A stretch of DNA of 64,000 nucleotides from Anthoceros angustus (taxonomy: Eukaryota; Plantae; Anthocerotophyta): assembly GCA_010909165.1 (NCBI GenBank), contig MU008202.1, forward strand, positions 186,001 to 250,000, written 5' to 3'. The notes under the pieces are model-generated. The model was given only the letters and a program-made list of their open reading frames with translations. It ran no database searches and was not told the origin of the DNA. The position numbers and the translations under genes are program-made. Positions 35,083 to 47,178 of the stretch are shown here, in pieces (position 1 is the stretch's first letter; every line of letters starts with the position of its first letter).

Positions 35083-36459
35083 TCAGAAATTGTCATCGCT
35101 GCTGTTATCCTGCAAATCTTTATGATCGCCGCCATCGATCTCTAGCATGTCGGAGTCATCTGCCTCCAGCGCTGGCGAAGGTGTCTCCCTCTCCGAGTTG
35201 TTGAGGGATGCTTGGATAGACATGATACCTCTTGCCAAGCGCTCCTCGCTCTTTTCCAGCCGCGAGGAGAGCACCGACGCAATTGCGTCTGCTCGGGGTT
35301 CACCTCTGTCGTGGCTGGAAGTCTTCCTGGATCCTCCAAGGCTGCCGCCCTTTGACGAGACGTCGATCTTGAACGTGGCTCTGGAGGATCCCGATCCGGT
35401 TCCCTTCAGGGAGGAAGCGCCGCCGCGGAACCAGTTCCGGAAGGTGCTTCCCTCCGCCTCTGCCCCTGCCTCTGCCCCTGTCTCTGCTTCTGCCTCAGAC
35501 TCATCCTCAGAGCTCCCAGCTTTGAGCATGGCTTCTTCAGGCACCTCCTCTCCTCTGAGGATGCTCACCTCTTCATTCTGCATGCGGCGTTGAAGGCGTC
35601 GCATCTTCCGCTGTGCTTCCTCCGCCTTCTCCTGCTCCTTGCGGCTGTGGCTTTCCATCTGCGCTTCCAGCCATTGCAGATTCCGGTGCTTCTCCAAATA
35701 CACAGCGAAGAGCCCTTTCAGCTGCCTCTCCAGAACCTCGTACTCATCCATGTACGATGGTCTCACGTTCTCCAGTGTGCTCAGCCGTTTCTCGCTCCTC
35801 TCCAGCTCCAATTTGCGCTTCTCGTACTGCGCCTGCAGGGTTTTCTCGTCATTTTCAAGACCCACCAGTTCCTCCTCAACGGCGGCGATGTTTTCCTTGA
35901 GTGCGTTGGTGGCATCCACAACGCTCTTTTCTATCTCATCCATGTCGGTGTTGAGATTTGCGGCCACCCATCTGGCCTCATACAGTTCTGGCTCGTCTGC
36001 CAGGCAATCATAGAGCGCAGCCCCGCACTTGGTGATCTCGTTCACCAAAGCTCTGGTGGCCTTGGTTTCAGAGGCTTTCCTGGTGGGGAATTGCTCGGTG
36101 TGTACCGGCTCATTCTCTTGCTGGCTTGCAATGGTCATTGCCTCGGCTAACACGGAAGCAATTTTGAGGAGCTCCTTCACAGCAACCCCATCTGCAGAGT
36201 ACAACCTCCTGGGGTTCAACTTGATTCTGCCCTTTGAAAGCATCAACTGGGTTGCACTCTTCAAGAAAGCCACCCTCTTCTGCTCAGTGGAGATGTCTGT
36301 TTCTAGCTCGGCTGTACTATCATATCTTGACACCAACCAATGCAGACAGTCAGCCACCAATTCGAAGTTTGGAGATCTGAAGCTGTCCATAGAAATTGGT
36401 CTTGGATACCCAAGAGTCCTCATCGTCACCACGAACTTACGCATGTCAGAGTAAGACAT
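35083..36459 (-). CDS. CLUAP1: Clusterin-associated protein 1 / IFT38 (IFT-B subunit), intronless
   Basis: MSYSDMRKF..MRTLGYPRPISMDSFRSPNFELVADCLHWLV..IKLNPRRLYSADGVAVKELLK..LENVRPSYMDEYE; coiled coil; acidic tail ending DDNF. Confidence 0.95.
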   Translation of the reverse strand: MSYSDMRKFVVTMRTLGYPRPISMDSFRSPNFELVADCLHWLVSRYDSTAELETDISTEQKRVAFLKSATQLMLSKGRIKLNPRRLYSADGVAVKELLKIASVLAEAMTIASQQENEPVHTEQFPTRKASETKATRALVNEITKCGAALYDCLADEPELYEARWVAANLNTDMDEIEKSVVDATNALKENIAAVEEELVGLENDEKTLQAQYEKRKLELERSEKRLSTLENVRPSYMDEYEVLERQLKGLFAVYLEKHRNLQWLEAQMESHSRKEQEKAEEAQRKMRRLQRRMQNEEVSILRGEEVPEEAMLKAGSSEDESEAEAETGAEAGAEAEGSTFRNWFRGGASSLKGTGSGSSRATFKIDVSSKGGSLGGSRKTSSHDRGEPRADAIASVLSSRLEKSEERLARGIMSIQASLNNSERETPSPALEADDSDMLEIDGGDHKDLQDNSSDDNF

Positions 36460-37595
36460 CTTGGATTGAGCATATACCCTACGTCTTGCTTCCAGATGTT
36501 ACTAAACACTGCCGATGGAAAGTGTGGGAACAACTCCTGAACCACAAGGAATGGACACTCCAGACGACGGTTGTGTCCGACATCCGTGCAAGCTTATTAT
36601 CCCTAACTGCCTCATTTGCAGCGATGGAACAAGGCAGGAGAGGATGGAGGAGCAATGAGCCAAGCTGTTGCCTTCTGAATCTTCTCTCTCGTTTAGGTCA
36701 CATTTGCAGCGTCAAAAGTCATGTAACCGTCAAGTCTTTCGGCTCTGACAATGTACACAATCTGCAGTGAAATGTCTCACCCAGCACCGACTGATAAGTC
36801 CTCCAAGAGGATGCAAGATGGCTATCCTTTGCTCAAGGTGCCCTTTCATTCGAATGCCGTTTTTCCTCATAAGAGACGAATTTCGCTGCTGGGACTGTCT
36901 CCAAGAAGGGGCTTTAAAAGAACTCGCTCGAACTGATGTTCAGATGCTAACCCAGAGTTTTTGTACGAGCAAACACATTTCTTCGCTCCTTATCTCGCCC
37001 TGAATTTGGTGGTCCTGCATGTTGTGACAGTCGTACATGCGCTTGTAGTTTCGATCCTTCAGAAGTTGGGAAGACTCGGGTTTGCAGGTGACCATTTGGC
37101 GAGCTTCCGCACATGTAGGCAGAGCACCGACTGTGGTAGGCGGCATCAGGATGTCGTCGAGCTGGCCAATCCTGTTCTTGGAAAGGGACTCCAGGGTTAC
37201 CAAGATAATCAGTTATGCAAACTGTGACGATGCGAGATGAAACTATTAGTACAGTAGCTGGTGAACATGTGAGATGAAACCATTAGAACAGCAGCTGGGA
37301 TCGCTTGAAACAGCCCGTCCGGTGCCGGCTGCCGGGCAAGGTCTTCACAGGATGGATGGACCTATCGAAGACCAAGCTCCAGGGAAGACGTGCTCTGCCA
37401 TTTCTGGGACAGCAGACTTGACGAGCAGTGCGCCCACCCACTTCTTCGTCTAGGTCCATCCATCCTGTGATCCAGAACTTGCCCAGTAACCGGTACCGGT
37501 TGAAGCGATGACTGTCTGGAGCGTGGTAATTAGATCCGGCCAAGAGCAGCACGATTCGCTGAGGCAGCTGTCTTTCTGGACCCAACAAATTGTTG

Positions 37596-40037
37596 ATGGG
37601 GTTAACTGGTATTCCAGCAAGAGCTCCCCCCGCCCACCTGACTTCATGCAATCAAGCTTTGGCAAACGACGACGCTGTCACGTGTGGCGCTTGGGCAAGG
37701 AAGCCAGCCCGTGAACGAGGATATCTGGGTGGATTGGGTCGTGGCCGGGAGCTCTTGTGGCAACCATCCTTCGTATATCGAACATATCGGTGGGATAACA
37801 GGGAACGTAGGAGGAGCCCCAGTTCGAGTTTGGATGTCTTGGGGCGTGGGGAATTCCAGGAGGTCGTGTGGTTAAGCAACCTCTACAAGCCCGCAGGATA
37901 CGAAAGTGGCCTAACGGCTGAAACTGTGAGCAACTTGTGTCAGCAGGGGGAGCTCACACGGGCTGTTGAGGCTCTGGGTGTTCTGGTGCACGCAGACTAT
38001 CCTACTCCCAGATCACTTTTTTATACGCTCCTAAAGCAATGTGTGGGTCAGAAGGATTTGCCTCTGGGTCGCCGGGTTCATGCCCTCACTGTGAAGCAGG
38101 GTTACGAGTTGGACACGTTCTTGTGCAACCACATCCTGCGGATGTATGCTTCCCGTGCCAGGTTGCGAGAAGCGATGGATGTGTTCACCACTGTTCCCAA
38201 ACCAGATGCCTTTACCTGGTCCGCCATAATCTGTGCGCATGTCCAACACGGACAAGATAAGCAGGCCATACAGCTGTATCATCGTATGCGCAGGTCAGGT
38301 GTGAAGGCAGATGGACATGTGTTTGTTGCAGCTCTTCAGGCTTGTGCAAGGGGAGCAGACCTGAAAGCTGGGCAACAGGTGCATGCTGATGTCTTGGCCA
38401 GTGATTTCGAGCCTAAGTTGTTTGTTTGGAATTGCTTGGTGGACATGTATGCCAAATGTGGCAGCTTGGAGGAGGCTCAGAGAGTCTTCGACGGACTTCA
38501 TGAAAAGGATGTGGTGACATGGACTGCCATGATAGCAGGATATTCCCAGCAGGGCATGGGGCAGGAAGCCCTTCATCTGTACAGGGCTATGCAAGAAGAC
38601 AGTGTTGTCGCACCCAATTCTGTGACATTTGTGTCCCTCCTGCAGGCATGTGCAAGTGTGGGCAGCCTGGCTTTGAGTAAGGGGAGGCAAGTTCATGCAC
38701 AGATCACAGACCAAGGTTATCAGGCTGATTTGTTTGTAGCCAGTAGTTTGGTAAACATGTATGCAAAGTGTGGCAGCCTAGAGGATGCTCAGCGTGTGTT
38801 TGACGAGCTTCCTCGCAAAGATGTGGTCACGTGGAATGCCCTGATAGCTGGATATGCCCAGAAGGACACGGGGCTGGAAGCTTTGAGTCTTTACAGGACC
38901 ATGCAGGAAGAAGGCAGTGTTGCACCCAATTCGGTGACATTTGTGTGTGTCCTTCAGGCATGTGGAAGCCTAGGCGACCCAGCTTTGGAGAAGGGAAAAC
39001 AGCTTCATGCACAAATTACAGAACAAGGACTTCAAGTGGATGTGTCTGTGGCCAACAGTTTGGTGAACATGTATGCCAAGTGTGGCAGCCTAGAGGATGC
39101 TCAGGGCCTGTTTGACAGGCTTCCTAAGAGAGATGTGGGAACGTGGAATGCCATGATAGCAGGATATTCTCAGAAGGGCATGGGTCTGGAAGCACTTCGT
39201 CTTTACAGGGCTATGCAAGAAGAAGGCCTGGCAGCACCAGATCGTGTGACATTTGTGTGCCTCCTGCAGGCATGTGCGAACGTCGCAGCATTGCATCTGG
39301 GAAGGCAGCTTCATGCTCAGGTTAGAGAACAAGGGCTTCTCACCGACGTATTTGTAGCCAGCAGCTTAATAAATATGTATGCAAAGTCAGGGAGCATGTT
39401 CTATGCACAACAGGTTTTTGATATATTACCTGCAAAAGACGCAGTCACCTGGAATGCACTGATTGCCGGATACACCTCCCAAGGAGCCAGTGACGAGGTC
39501 TTTGACTTGATTCAGAAGATGAGAGAGGATGGCAAACAGCCAACCGGGTCCTCATTTACCAGTGTGCTAACGGTATGCAGTCATACTGGCCTAGTGAACA
39601 AGGGGCAAGAGTACTTTGAGGCTATGAGACGGTATGGCATCAGCCCCATGGTCGAGCATTACACATGCATGGTGGATCTCCTGGGTCGTGCTGGCCAAGT
39701 GGATGAGGCACTAGCTGTGGCGAGGACAATGCCTGTACTGCCTGATGCTGCAGTATGGAGCACTCTATTGGCTGCCTGTCGAAAGTGGGGCGATGTGGAG
39801 GTGGGACGCCAAGCATTTGATGAAGCTGTTTGTCTAAACAAGGTGGATGCAACACCATATGTGTTAATGTCAAATATATACGCTGGCGCCCAGATGTGGG
39901 AGCAGGCAATGGAGATGCAGGCAAGGAGAATAGGAAATGGGGCATGGAAGCAGCCGGGGCAGAGCTGGTGGACAGACACGGAAGGTGTGGTGCATAGCTT
40001 TCGGGCTGGGGATTACAACCATCCCCTCTGTGAATAA
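37596..40037 (+). CDS. PLS-class PPR RNA-editing factor: 17 PPR motifs + E1/E2 + truncated WW-type DYW (E+), intronless
   Basis: P-L-S triplets (VVTWNALIAGY / VTFV.LLQAC / SLVNMYAKCG), P2-L2-S2 (HYTCMVDLLGRAG), E1/E2, then KQPGQSWWTDTEGVVHSF and a stop. Confidence 0.96.
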   Translation: MGLTGIPARAPPAHLTSCNQALANDDAVTCGAWARKPARERGYLGGLGRGRELLWQPSFVYRTYRWDNRERRRSPSSSLDVLGRGEFQEVVWLSNLYKPAGYESGLTAETVSNLCQQGELTRAVEALGVLVHADYPTPRSLFYTLLKQCVGQKDLPLGRRVHALTVKQGYELDTFLCNHILRMYASRARLREAMDVFTTVPKPDAFTWSAIICAHVQHGQDKQAIQLYHRMRRSGVKADGHVFVAALQACARGADLKAGQQVHADVLASDFEPKLFVWNCLVDMYAKCGSLEEAQRVFDGLHEKDVVTWTAMIAGYSQQGMGQEALHLYRAMQEDSVVAPNSVTFVSLLQACASVGSLALSKGRQVHAQITDQGYQADLFVASSLVNMYAKCGSLEDAQRVFDELPRKDVVTWNALIAGYAQKDTGLEALSLYRTMQEEGSVAPNSVTFVCVLQACGSLGDPALEKGKQLHAQITEQGLQVDVSVANSLVNMYAKCGSLEDAQGLFDRLPKRDVGTWNAMIAGYSQKGMGLEALRLYRAMQEEGLAAPDRVTFVCLLQACANVAALHLGRQLHAQVREQGLLTDVFVASSLINMYAKSGSMFYAQQVFDILPAKDAVTWNALIAGYTSQGASDEVFDLIQKMREDGKQPTGSSFTSVLTVCSHTGLVNKGQEYFEAMRRYGISPMVEHYTCMVDLLGRAGQVDEALAVARTMPVLPDAAVWSTLLAACRKWGDVEVGRQAFDEAVCLNKVDATPYVLMSNIYAGAQMWEQAMEMQARRIGNGAWKQPGQSWWTDTEGVVHSFRAGDYNHPLCE

Positions 40038-40451: not shown

Positions 40452-41865
40452 TCATGTCCTGCCAGTGGAAAAATTACTGATGAGAACCTGCATGCACGAA
40501 AGGGACCTAGTGTCCTCCACCGGATGTGGCAGATTTTCAATTGGCATTCTCATGAACTGGTCTACTAGGAGACAAACATACTTGGACCTGTGCCACGCTC
40601 GGAGTGCATCATAGGCTTCCAAGACTTCCTTGAATTTCAGCTCCGACTCCTCTGTAATCGAGAGGCGCTTCTCAGCAAACCGAGCGCAGGCAACTGATTC
40701 CGACAAAGTAGGTTATGTATTTAAGGTACCTTTGCGGGACATGTTCCGATCAGGATGATGCTCCATGGCCCTTGCTCTAAAGGCCGCCTGGAATGAACAT
40801 AAGGCCCAAGTTAAGAGACAGAGAGCTTGTCGAAAGATACAAACGTTACCCATACCAGAGTACCTTGATTTCTGCTTCCGAATACAACGAGTGCCTTTTC
40901 CTGCCATAACAGACAATCGAGATCAGATTTCGACTATTATCTCTCACACGAAGACAATTTATCAGAACACATGGCAGAAATACAGAAAGACAAAATTGGA
41001 GAGAAAGATCTGACACCTACGCGTCTAGACCCAGAACTTGGTAGTGATGTAACAGTCCAGGCCTTTTCGATACATGTGAATCATTTCCTGACCCTGTTCC
41101 CCTGTCTTCTTGGGTCTTTTTTCCCCAATCAGTCCTAGCATTCCATCCTGCATGGCGTTGGTCGTGCCACTTCTCGTAGCTCCCAGCATACCGCATTTTT
41201 TCTCTGTAAAAGGCCTCCTGCATTCTCCGAATCCGCTCCTGCAACGAGGGGAGTCTGATAAGTGTATCAGCACTCCCCTCCGCTGCTAAAAACACGTGAC
41301 TACCTGTCCCCTACCTTCCTCATCTCATCTTCCAAGTGCTCTGGCCAAACACGCTGAGTTCGTGTGGACCCTCCTGCATCCGTGGAGTGTGTGCCCCCGT
41401 CCCATTTCCTTCTACTCGAGTTCCCATATTCTCCAGGTTTATACGAACTGCATCCCTTCAACACCCAGCTAGAATTCCATCACTTCGTTCGGACAAGCTG
41501 CTCATCTCTCAACCAACTAGCCTTTCATACACACCTGGCAATGGTGAACAGCTTTCTGCGAAGGACAAGTACGTTTCCTAACTGCACTAGCAGCGTGCAA
41601 GAGTTAGAAGGCATATTCAACAACCCTAGTTCAGCTGTGAGAAACATGGAAGTAGAAGGAACACAAGTACTGTGATTGTTGAGCTTACAGCAATGGCTGC
41701 CATGAAGAGGACTCCCAATTCCAAAACAGACCGACGACGGAGGTTTGAGGAGTCATTCTTAGCCCTGTCATTCCCCAGCTCGGAACCCGCCATTCTTTTC
41801 TCCGCGACATTATCTGCAGAAGAGTTCTTGTTCTCTGGAATCAAAAGAGCATCCGCCAACGACAT
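40452..41865 (-). CDS. DnaJ (type III) protein with C-terminal J domain and intact HPD; N-terminal exons and stop approximate
   Basis: Spliced HHYQVLGLDA|KRHSLYSEAEIK|AAFRARAMEHHPDRNMSRK|EESELKFKEVLEAYDAL; exons ..41021, 40900-40864, 40787-40730, 40651..; upstream ERIRRMQ segment and a hydrophobic stretch. Confidence 0.85.
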
Positions 41866-42249
41866 GCAGACATGCACCTGCCGATGGGATTGGCAGCGGG
41901 TGGCGGGACTTCTTGCCGCGATGTGACCGAATGATTAAAATGCAAACTTATTTCTTGATAGCATTTTAGTGGATTTTAACTCGATTTTCATCTCAGGCGT
42001 CGCTACCCTATTGCATTCCACCCCTTGTACAGGCGTGGACTGGCCTGCTGGGAGATGCAAGCAGGCATTGGGAGGACTTCGAACTCTGGAGCGGCTGTGG
42101 CGACCCCAAATACTGATACCCTAAACCTACTTCGTCTTTGTCTCCTTGAGCGAATAACTTGTAGAGCTCGGATCCCTGGTCTGAGTTAAAACTTTGGGCT
42201 CAGCTCATCTTCGAAATGTTGATTTGAGTGGAGAGTTTGGGGTGGAAGT

Positions 42250-43292
42250 ATGAATTCCTTTTGCAGACGGTCATTTGCCTTGCTGCGCAAACATTTATCG
42301 GTGCGCCTCTGCCCTCAGTAATCTCCTGAAGGATACTTTCTGCTGACCCCGGGATGCAGTTCTCTGAGTGGTGGAATTGTGCGGTGTTTCTTTCGGTGGC
42401 AGGTTGCTCAGCAGCGAAATTTTAGTGAGGAAGTCTCTGCCGCCGCTGCTGTCAAAGACGAGTGGTGGTCTGTAGATGGACGGGTTGTTCGCATTCGAGG
42501 TGGAGAGATTATTCGCCCGAAGGAAGAGTATGAGCTGGTCGCGAATCCCAAGCCCATGAATTTGAAGAAGATTAGGATTGAAAGGATAAAAAGAGCCGCC
42601 GAAACGAAGATCAGGGACCGACCGGTTGGTATCACTGTTTGTGTTGTAGCTCTCATCCGCCCTGCTGACCTTCATTGTCGTAACCCTTGTCACATTCTGG
42701 GGATAGGGACAATCAGTCTACTGGCAAAGTCACCTGAAAAACCTACAGTTTGCAAGAACGGAGTGGGAAACTCTGTGCTACGAGGGTCCCCCTAAGGAGC
42801 AAGTTGCTGTCAATTTCAATCTACATATTGACCACTACAGGGTCCTGGGGATAGAGAGGTATGCACCGTTGCTTTTAGGAGCCAATCTCTGTTTCTGTGG
42901 TAGGAAGTTGGCTTCTGACGGGCTCTTTCTCTTCTGTGGCAGGAGGAACGAGCCTTTCTCCTTACTACAGCTGAAGGTTGGAACTACACTTCTTGGTTGG
43001 GGGTTGCTAGATTCGCAGTGTGGAATTGACTCATGTTTCCTGACTGGCTCTATCTGCAGAACGCCTTCAAGAGGCGAGCCAAGCTCTATCAGCCGGATCC
43101 AAGGGAACGAGGGAAGTATAATGGTAAGGGTATTGCATGCTGAGAATCAGCAGTATTCTTTTGCCGCTTTTTATACCTTAAGAGCCGTGACTCACACAAT
43201 GTATTTGATTGTTAACAGCTGGAGCAGCCGCTAAATTCAGGCAACTCTTCAATTCCTACAAGGCCTTGTCCTCACAGAAGAATAGGATATAG
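42250..43292 (+). CDS. J-like protein (QPD instead of HPD) with mitochondrial-type presequence; exons 42250-42300, 42403-42624, 42707-42858, 42943-42976, 43060-43123, 43219-43292
   Basis: Five GT-AG introns give one open frame: MNSFCRRSFALLRKHLSVAQQRNFS...DHYRVLGIER|RNEPFSLLQLK|NAFKRRAKLYQPDPRERGKYN|AGAAAKFRQLFNSYKAL. Confidence 0.82.
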
Positions 43293-43801: not shown

Positions 43802-46800
43802 TCATATTTGAAAATCAATAGCAGCTGAGCTGTTCTTCTCAGCCCCCTCAATTTGCTGCAACGTGGGAGACCCCGGCAGCTTCTTCGTCCTACGTCTTGG
43901 AGAAGAGGTCGTCGAGGATTTTCTCTTGGGCGACTTAGGCGGGTCTTCACTGGTTGAGGTGGACTTGGGGGATCTCGGGCTTCGAGGAGATCGGGATTTC
44001 TTTTGAGGTTTAGGCTCCACGGTCTCCTCCAAGGTAGACGGTGGAGCCACAGGCGAGACCTCAAGTTCCTCTGCGGCCACAGAAGCAATACCGGCCACAC
44101 TCTCCGCAAGAGCCACAGACGTGCTAACTGCGGCATCTGGGGATGCCGTGGGACATTGACGTACCAGATGATCCTCAGTTTGGTTCTGAGTTTCATCCAC
44201 CAACGGCGCAGGGTCCAGTGTGCCAGGCCTCGTCACACAAAGCCACTGACGGGGTGCAGTTATGTCGTCTCCTCCAGCTATCGGGAAGTGAAAGCTGCCG
44301 GTCTCCGATTCCTGTGAAACTTCAGTGTTAGTACGCGTAAGAACGACACCAGTGGCAACTTCAGGACACAAGTAGGTACCTGAATCACAATGGAGTACGG
44401 AGGTGGCATGTGGAACTCCACGTCGTCCCTTTTTGAGATTGTGAATCTGACCTGAAAATGCAAAACGGTTGACAACGACTAAAGTTAAGAACTGCTTGAG
44501 GATTCGGGTCTCTGCTCGATAAGCGGACAGTTGCACATAACATGATACCTGGTGTCGTTCTTTCCACTTTGGAAAGAAGTCGGTTCCCAAGAGTTGAAAT
44601 AAGTGATCACGCATTTCATCGTTTGTTACCAGTAAACACTTGAATCTTACTGCAGCATAGAGCCAATACCTGCGAACCCATCAGGATGAGAAAAAATACA
44701 GGCCAAAAATCTAGCAGCCTATATCTCATACTGGCCTAAACCAAAAGAGAGTAGAGAAATACAAACCAATCATCGTTTGATCCTGTCGGTGTAGTAAATA
44801 TTGTGTCCGCAACCCTCCACGCTTGCAAACACTGTTGACCATTCGGAGTCATTGCAGCTCCGTCTTTTGTCCGCTTATGATGCAAGACAATGAGAGGTAG
44901 TTTCTTTGATGGACTCAATTTCTGTACTCCCTTCACAACAGCATTAACCTGCAGAGGAGGAGTCACAGTAAGTCGTCAAGCAAAGGACAGCTCTGAACTC
45001 AAAGGATCCAACCCATGCGTTCTCCTGACCTGCTACTGGGAGAGACTACAACAATGCAAACATGGATCAGAAAGAAGCCTTTTTCATGGCAGACCTGCGT
45101 AAAATTGAATCCCCCTTCACTGAAATTCTGATTCAGCAAGCCCACATTTGCAGCGTCCACAATTGCATCATAGGGACCATGACGGTCAAGCCATGACTGC
45201 AACAACAAACAGCGTGAATATCAGAAAGCAAAGCCACAGTTCATAAGCCAGACTACATCACTCCTGTCAAAGGAGCAGATCCATGAGCAGGCTTGAACAC
45301 TGTTCTGTGGATGAATGACACTCTTGTTTTAGACGACACTTGTACCTGAAAATTTTTGAAATCCGCACGGGCTTCTCTTGAGCAGGCAAGGGTTGCAAGA
45401 GACTCTGCAAAGCTTTCGGTCTCCCGTGGATCAATATCAATGGTTACTAGCTGCTCTTTACAGCATTGGCAAGCTCCGCTTTTATCAAGGGTGGTGTAAT
45501 CAGCTTTCCAACGACCCTTCCCAAGCCAACCCAGACCATGCCAGCCCCCCCCACCTGCTTCTATTGCTTGCTGTATTTGGTCCTGCCCCGGCGGCTTAGA
45601 CCATGTATGTCTCCCAAACTGATCAGCCCCCTCTTGAGTGAACCATCGATGGATAATGTCAACTGTAGCAGGAGACAGCTCCCGCATATTCTTTCGGAAT
45701 CTGTGTAGAAGAGCGTATACTCTGTCTTCCAAGCCTGTACTCACACTAAGTTCCAAAAGTGCCCGCAGCTCATCTTCTTCCGGCTGAACACCTGTTTCAT
45801 TCATATGAGCATATACTTCAAATGCTTTCTCCACTTGCTTGAGCTTACAGTAAGTGAAGAGAGCAGGACCATAGGACCGAAGCTTAGGAGCGATCTTCAA
45901 CGCAGCCATCTTCTTTATAACCTCAAACGCCAAATCGCCATCCTCAATCGCAACAGCTAGCCTAGCCACTGAGGTCAGTGTTGGTTCGCCAGCAGTAACC
46001 CCACTAGCTTGCATATGCTTATATATCTCAAACCCTCGTTCCTGAGCTGTTAGCTTGACTTCATCCGTGACCTCAGTAAGATTCCATGTCCATTTTACCT
46101 GATCGTTCCCGACTGCGGGCTCCTGCAGTGAGTCTACGGGAACAGACCCCTCGTTCCCGACACTTCCCTTCTCCCTACCACTCTTCCCCGCCTTCAGAGT
46201 GCCCAATGCAGCCGAGGAACACAGATACAAGAGCACGTTATACGCGTACTGGTCGAGTCTGATAGTTCCCTCCTTGACCACTTGGTCATAGAGGTTCAAT
46301 GCGTACAAGAGATCCCCGAACTTGGAGCACATGTCCAAGTTCCTTCGAAATTCTGACTCAGCGGAGTACTTCTTCTTCTTCCTTCTGCTTCCTCCGTTTT
46401 GCTTTTCGCTAGGTCTTTTCAGGGATCCCCCTACCTGGTCATCCATCTCCTCTGAATCCACAATAACAGAGCTTTCTGTCAGGCGGTCGTTGTTGGTTTC
46501 AACAGCCAACTCTACAACGCGCTGCGTGAAGGCCGTCCTTTTCTCAGTGTCCAACACTGTCTGGAACGAGGACCGACTGCGATTAGAACGATTGGAACCA
46601 ACACCGTCAGCAATGCCTGTAGTGCCGATATACAAATTTCTGTTCGAGCTCGAACTCTCTGAAACACGTCCAGAAGAATCTATCCTCGGACTGTATCTAG
46701 ACTTCCTTATCTGAACATCCTGAGAAGACTGCGGCTTCGCGGATGCCGAATCCCGATGAAGTTGCGACTTCCCGGAAACCGCTCTTCCTGTCTCCACTTT

Positions 46801-47178
46801 ACGATTCACATGCCGCGGAAACCTGCGCTCCTCCGTCCGTGCCCCGGAACCAGCATCCGCAACCTTGATATTCTGAACCAGCTTTTCCACTACCGGCCCT
46901 GGTGACTCCGAAGACTCTCTCCTCCAAACAGAATTTCTATACCTGCTACCGGCCTGGGACCAGCTCTTGGAAGACTCGGCCGGCTGGTCAGACGTTTCCG
47001 ATTGGGAAACAATGCTCCTCGCCTGCCAGCGATTTAAGGATATTTGCTGACGAGAGAAGAGCCAAGGGCAAGAGGGCCACCGAGGCAGTGACTGCAGACC
47101 CAGCTGCAGGTCCAGCTTCAATCCATTGCGCGGAACTGTGAAGCAACGTTCAGTGAAGCAATTGCAGTAGAAAAACAT
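43802..47178 (-). CDS. PRORP: Protein-only RNase P (PPR + Zn + NYN domains), multi-exon
   Basis: LDMCSK.GD..YNVLLYLCS, PKLRSYGPAL, CQCC, GPYDAIVDAANVG, TPTGSNDDWYWLYAA, LLVTNDEMRDH.FQLL, HMPPPYSIVIQE..HFP..WLC. Confidence 0.96.

Follow-up and report, generated by a model that had tools for sequence, protein, structure and literature searches.

An old duplicate of a DJC78-like J-protein gene, facing its HPD-bearing neighbor in a hornwort genome, may encode a lineage-restricted J-like protein

Two genes that lie head to head in the genome of the hornwort Anthoceros angustus both end in a J domain, one carrying the HPD motif and the other QPD. Are they partners, or only relatives? A sequence-only reading of the locus had taken them for a co-regulated activator and a catalytically dead partner or decoy. 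The genes lie in a 64,000-nucleotide stretch (the window; contig MU008202.1 of assembly GCA_010909165.1, positions 186,001 to 250,000), in whose numbering coordinates are given unless another locus is named.

In the window sequence, the genes are divergent, with predicted ATGs at 41865 (minus strand) and 42250 (plus strand) that are 385 bp apart. Six-frame translation and a splice-site listing gave a minus model of 289 amino acids in seven exons and a plus model of 184 or 198 amino acids in six exons; both frames are stop-free, and all introns of both predicted models are GT-AG and 76-124 nt long. HPD (CAT CCT GAT) occupies 40757-40749 of the assembly in the minus gene and QPD (CAG CCG GAT) occupies 43090-43098 in the plus gene, whose Q codon is one base from a His codon. 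Both J domains are split at equivalent codons by three introns in phases 2, 0, and 1. The layout, motifs, and introns, as well as the J peptides quoted in the sequence-only reading, are thus as it had described them. The pre-J exon boundaries of our models were picked so as to be open. Database searches were run exon by exon, and the joined proteins were used for the frame check, codon counts, and J-domain tree. A plus-strand start farther upstream, at 41693, was ruled out, as it overlaps the conserved first exon of the minus gene.

The three introns might have been a special feature of the head-to-head pair. We rejected this idea, since the same introns are present in Dioscorea, where the corresponding family gene has six introns (phases 0, 0, 0, 2, 0, and 1), the last three at the J-domain codons of both window genes. 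Exon breaks at poplar-like loci are identical to the Dioscorea pattern. Judged from these gene structures, the three J-domain introns are ancestral to the family; as such they mark kinship and imply no special link between the neighbors. The family genes of a liverwort (Riccia, L002) and of a moss-like contig (L009) have lost all three J-domain introns, which are kept here and in angiosperms.

By sequence, the minus gene belongs to a land-plant family of class C J proteins, of which it is a typical member. A search with its exon 4 matched four plant proteins among 1.84 billion representatives, and the best match led to a family present in ferns, Psilotum, Riccia, and angiosperms, plus moss-like metagenome loci. 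In alignment, family members carry a hydrophobic helix in the N-terminal part, then a long ERIRRMQ helix, with the J domain at the C terminus; in the model of a fern member, this domain has pLDDT values above 90. All seven minus exons correspond to segments of the family proteins. Exon 1 (41689..41865, minus strand like all that follow; alternative in-frame ATG at 41793) matches the fern N-terminal motif and ends within the first half of the membrane anchor, at the position of Dioscorea intron 1. Exon 2 (41535..41581; donor at its 3′ end 41534 or 41530) holds the end of the anchor and a basic LRRK stretch (p=0.0005 against the moss-like locus L005), and exon 3 (41315..41447; acceptor uncertain) encodes, in an open frame, a polar linker with a weak family match. 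The ERIRRMQ helix and the sequence up to J helix I are on exon 4 (41021..41238; family profile iE 1.5e-15), the long helix I-II loop on exon 5 (40864..40900), and helix II with HPD on exon 6 (40730..40787). Exon 7 (40452..40651) encodes helices III-IV and an atypical tail of ~48 amino acids, which use of a donor-like site at 40581 may shorten. Hydropathy reaches 2.24 at residues 47-65, followed by basic residues, matching moss and ferns. Thus, the anchor, the ERIRRMQ helix, the long helix I-II loop, and the C-terminal J domain with HPD are all as in DJC78-like class C J proteins, and six intron positions, five of them in the same phase, are common to the minus gene and its Dioscorea relative. 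From this anatomy, we infer that the minus protein is a membrane-tethered recruiter of Hsp70.

We take the family to be that of Arabidopsis At4g07990/DJC78, an assignment that is probably correct. The 230-amino-acid length of At4g07990 and its C-terminal end, as deduced from a primer rather than by direct alignment, agree with the family (PMC3720927). DJC78 is not imported into chloroplasts, and in the literature that we found its function is undescribed.

The plus gene shares with this family the three J introns and the length of the helix I-II loop. From the LG of helix I to the K of helix II it has 12 residues; 25 of 26 family members have 13, and the 63 generic DnaJ domains compared have 9. 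The family introns, together with a loop of 12-13 rather than 9 residues, bear out the earlier suggestion that the two genes are related. On the plus strand, exon 3 (42707 or 42749..42858; acceptor 42706 or 42748) runs from an ARTEW motif to J helix I, exon 4 (42943..42976) encodes the long loop of family type, exon 5 (43060..43123) a basic helix II and QPD, and exon 6 (43219..43292; family profile iE 0.0096) helix III (KFRQL) to the stop, with KFRQ common to moss and Riccia. The result is a J-type helix pattern with a degenerate HPD. HPD[QR]N and an anchor region are present in all 26 aligned family members and absent from the plus gene, which reads QPDPR at the motif, so that the RN/QN after PD is also gone. 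In a J-domain tree, the plus branch is 8.4 long, compared to 1.4 for the minus gene and a median of 0.24. As the domain is so long-branched, the H-to-Q change is one among many. Neither placement of the plus domain that we considered, as sister to the minus gene (p-AU 0.40) or as a family member (p-AU 0.53), was rejected.

The two proteins also differ at their N termini. Maximal hydropathy of the plus protein, from the predicted start, is 0.29 compared to 2.24 in the minus protein, and it has no membrane anchor. Its exon 1 (42250..42300, plus strand; start uncertain, with an acceptor-like site at 42266) encodes a basic, acid-free, presequence-like leader, with five K/R and no D/E in the first 25 amino acids, that ends near an R-x-F-S site. 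Such leaders are typical of mitochondrial presequences. On composition, the plus protein is probably mitochondrial.

Several observations bear on the age of the plus gene. By blastn, no real nucleotide similarity is left between the two genes. Over 80 hand-anchored codons, identity at codon positions 1, 2, and 3 is 0.54, 0.63, and 0.35, and 17 of the 27 degenerate codons that encode the same residue differ. For CLUAP1, compared between the Anthoceros genome and a relative, 158/305 (52%) same-residue codons differ; divergence between the minus and plus genes is at least as great. On these comparisons, the duplication is old. A neutral copy would keep its frame and splice sites with P=0.08 at 0.05 substitutions per site and P=0.007 at 0.1, indels ignored. 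Since third positions are saturated while the frame is intact, the codon pattern argues for coding constraint on the plus gene during most of its history, with a recent loss of function possible.

These data bear directly on one alternative, in which the plus gene is a functionless duplicate under relaxed selection and QPD arose late in its degeneration or stems from an error of one base in the assembly. Decay would account for the very long branch and the many J-core substitutions, and also for the failure to find an orthologue of the plus gene in ESM Atlas, PDB, a 5.8-billion protein set, JGI metagenomes, or Pfam; the single base that separates the Q codon from His is what a base error would produce. 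However, six exons and five canonical introns retain an intact frame despite third-position saturation, and the adjoining PPR, CLUAP1, and PRORP open reading frames are long and unbroken. We regard decay or error as unlikely, while giving it more weight than the alternatives that follow.

A second alternative concerns the front of the plus gene. The N-terminal halves of the two proteins had been called not alignable. This was overstated, since a weak alignment exists, although the similarity is slight. Exon 2 (42403..42624, plus strand) encodes a predicted beta-hairpin, then a helix with an ERIRR-like motif. Its similarity to fern family members exceeds that of shuffled sequences (p=0.003 before any correction for about 40 tests); for angiosperms and the minus gene p is 0.07-0.09, and similarity to moss and Riccia is not significant. 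With the longer form of exon 3, the spacing W-x9-ART[DE]W agrees between the minus and plus genes, and the matches are collinear. A single-sequence model of exon 2, of low confidence (pLDDT 56), has a hairpin then a helix, the same order as in the fern model. Alternatively, exon shuffling could have produced a chimeric J-like protein: only the 3′ exons of the minus gene, starting at the phase-0 intron that precedes the ERIRR exon, would have been copied and fused to the front end of an unrelated gene with an organelle-targeted product. Consistent with this, plus intron 2 is in phase 0, like family intron 3, and lies 15 codons off the family position; exons 1 and 2 have no intron position in common with the family; and none of the exon 2 similarities to angiosperms, moss, Riccia, or the minus gene reaches significance. 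Against it, the ERIRR-like motif that closes exon 2 precedes the J domain by 57 residues, close to the 63 of the family, and the searches revealed no donor: exon 2 found no relatives in ESM Atlas, PDB, JGI metagenomes, or Pfam and no match in the 5.8-billion protein set (lengths about 86-275 amino acids), although such blanks are not proof of absence. We consider shuffling rather unlikely.

The explanation that we tentatively prefer, at a little less than an even chance, is that an old duplicate became a lineage-restricted, Hsp70-independent J-like protein while its neighbor kept the ancestral role, so that adjacency records origin, not partnership. An inverted duplication of a DJC78-like class C gene would have left two adjacent genes sharing a single short promoter region from which they diverge. 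The minus copy would have retained the ancestral job: it would span the membrane once and, going by what is known of the family, use its HPD J domain to recruit Hsp70 and stimulate it, at the membrane face that bears the basic LRRK stretch. The plus copy would have lost the anchor, gained a presequence-like, probably mitochondrial leader, drifted fast across the J domain with loss of HPD-RN, and yet been retained for a long time as a coding gene. Its product would most likely be an Hsp70-free, small soluble scaffold or client-binding J-like protein in a compartment other than that of its neighbor. Support for this explanation comes from the shared ancestral introns, the family-type loop length, the collinear weak pre-J matches, and the same hairpin-then-helix order in independent models. 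It comes also from the intact frame despite codon divergence, the absence of a transmembrane segment in the plus protein, and the fact that most Arabidopsis J-like proteins are thought to be Hsp70-independent (PMC11349236). It is weakened by the lack of a plus orthologue in the sets searched, the borderline statistics of the pre-J homology, the offset of plus intron 2, the inability of the tree to place the plus domain, a location predicted from composition, and the retention of basic residues in helix II.

As an old duplicate of this kind, the plus gene would resemble the J-like (class D or type IV) proteins, such as the 21 in Arabidopsis and TbPam18 (HSD), which have a degenerate HPD on J-type helices; most of the Arabidopsis proteins are probably Hsp70-independent, as proposed for the plus protein. 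Unlike them, it derives from and adjoins a DJC78-like gene and carries the H-to-Q change used in the laboratory. If this explanation holds, the locus contributes a J-like protein restricted to one lineage, along with a hornwort-type representative of a land-plant J family that is as yet unstudied, and illustrates on a modest scale how duplication and retargeting can give rise to a J-like protein.

The activator and dead partner of the sequence-only reading would be co-expressed and would heterodimerize or compete for clients, tuning Hsp70 as Pam16 does Pam18. The back-to-back layout invites this idea, as does the retention, in the plus protein, of a basic helix II and perhaps of the ERIRR helix, and a minus protein in the inner membrane would place both J domains in the matrix. 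Engineered QPD proteins can also be dominant if client binding remains, as DNAJB12-QPD blocks ER-phagy (PMC9798423). Were the pair to prove functional, evolution would have produced its own equivalent of the standard H33Q mutant, and the J/J-like design would have arisen a second time. However, H33Q destroys function, and in ERj1 it also eliminates ATP-dependent BiP binding (PMC1906734). The expectation that a QPD domain fails to stimulate Hsp70 therefore holds, but since ATP-dependent binding is lost too, efficient occupation of Hsp70 by the plus domain is not to be expected either, a poor fit to a decoy.

The comparison with Pam18/Pam16 (Tim14/Tim16) of the mitochondrial import motor fares no better. 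There too a J protein is paired with a J-like one, and the anchor-then-C-terminal-J topology of the minus protein resembles that of Pam18. Yet the sequence relation is limited to the generic J domain: Tim14/Tim16 chains are absent from the 59 PDB hits of the family profile, which matched generic J domains, Tim14/Tim16 are absent among the fold matches listed, and no Pam Pfam domain matched the window exons. Moreover, the plus protein has no hydrophobic segment with which both partners could be tethered in the same membrane. Pam18/Pam16 are pan-eukaryotic and their dimerization is shown biochemically, while the hornwort pair was seen once. The analogy is, on these comparisons, topological only.

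Nor does the arrangement recur. No second J-like gene is present in the available flanks of the family loci of Riccia, a moss-like contig, Dioscorea, and two poplar-like contigs. In a relative (13-kb contig from SRR33208241, with 70-74% nucleotide identity in genes), CLUAP1 follows PRORP after 1.3 kb, and the interval contains no gene for a PPR, J, or J-like protein. The duplication may predate the split from this relative, where the pair could lie at another locus. Since the CLUAP1 loci of Marchantia and Sphagnum have no neighbors in common with the window, absence in the relative is compatible with either gain or loss of the block. In addition, genes lie close together in hornwort genomes (PMC8075897), and short distances between divergent neighbors are to be expected. 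With no anchor on the plus protein, many J-domain changes, and an arrangement seen at no other locus examined, we consider an activator and dead partner improbable. Least probable of all is that a conserved H-to-Q paralogue, co-transcribed with its HPD parent from a bidirectional promoter, damps the parent by client sharing or ERIRR-helix dimerization as an independent J/J-like regulatory pair of hornwort mitochondria.

The 384 nt between the predicted ATGs (41866..42249) would be the divergent promoter region. They contain a telo-box-like element at 42119 and a site-II-like element at 42195, and no heat-shock element or TATA. Also in this region, 41923-42121 on the plus strand is an AT-rich intron-like stretch with a good acceptor at 41996, then a 42-codon open stretch with no Pfam hit; this may be a 5′ UTR intron and exon, or chance.

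The pair is flanked by CLUAP1/IFT38 (35083-36459, minus strand) and a PLS-E PPR gene (37590-40037, plus strand) on one side and PRORP (43802-47178, minus strand) on the other. The PPR stop (40035-40037) falls just past the E/E+ region, and the 250 nt that follow (to 40293) have a faint resemblance, by eye, to DYW and may be a decayed DYW-type relic. The best named matches of CLUAP1 are in Sphagnum, Klebsormidium, and Marchantia, as befits a land plant whose sperm are flagellate; the short introns, a GC content of about 50%, and the close gene packing agree with a hornwort. CLUAP1 is intronless in the window and in the relative (L001:10001-11380), while in Marchantia and Sphagnum the gene extends over 3-4 kb although its product is of similar length or shorter, which suggests intron loss or replacement by a retrocopy in this lineage. 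In both the window (43802-44614, minus strand) and the relative (L001:8018-8668), PRORP has a long S/P/K-rich low-complexity extension after the nuclease domain, diverged between the two species. Finally, in Riccia fluitans, an unannotated upstream exon (L002:9534-9656) matches the anchor-end motif of the DJC78-like family, and the annotated start of R1flu_019870 is too late.
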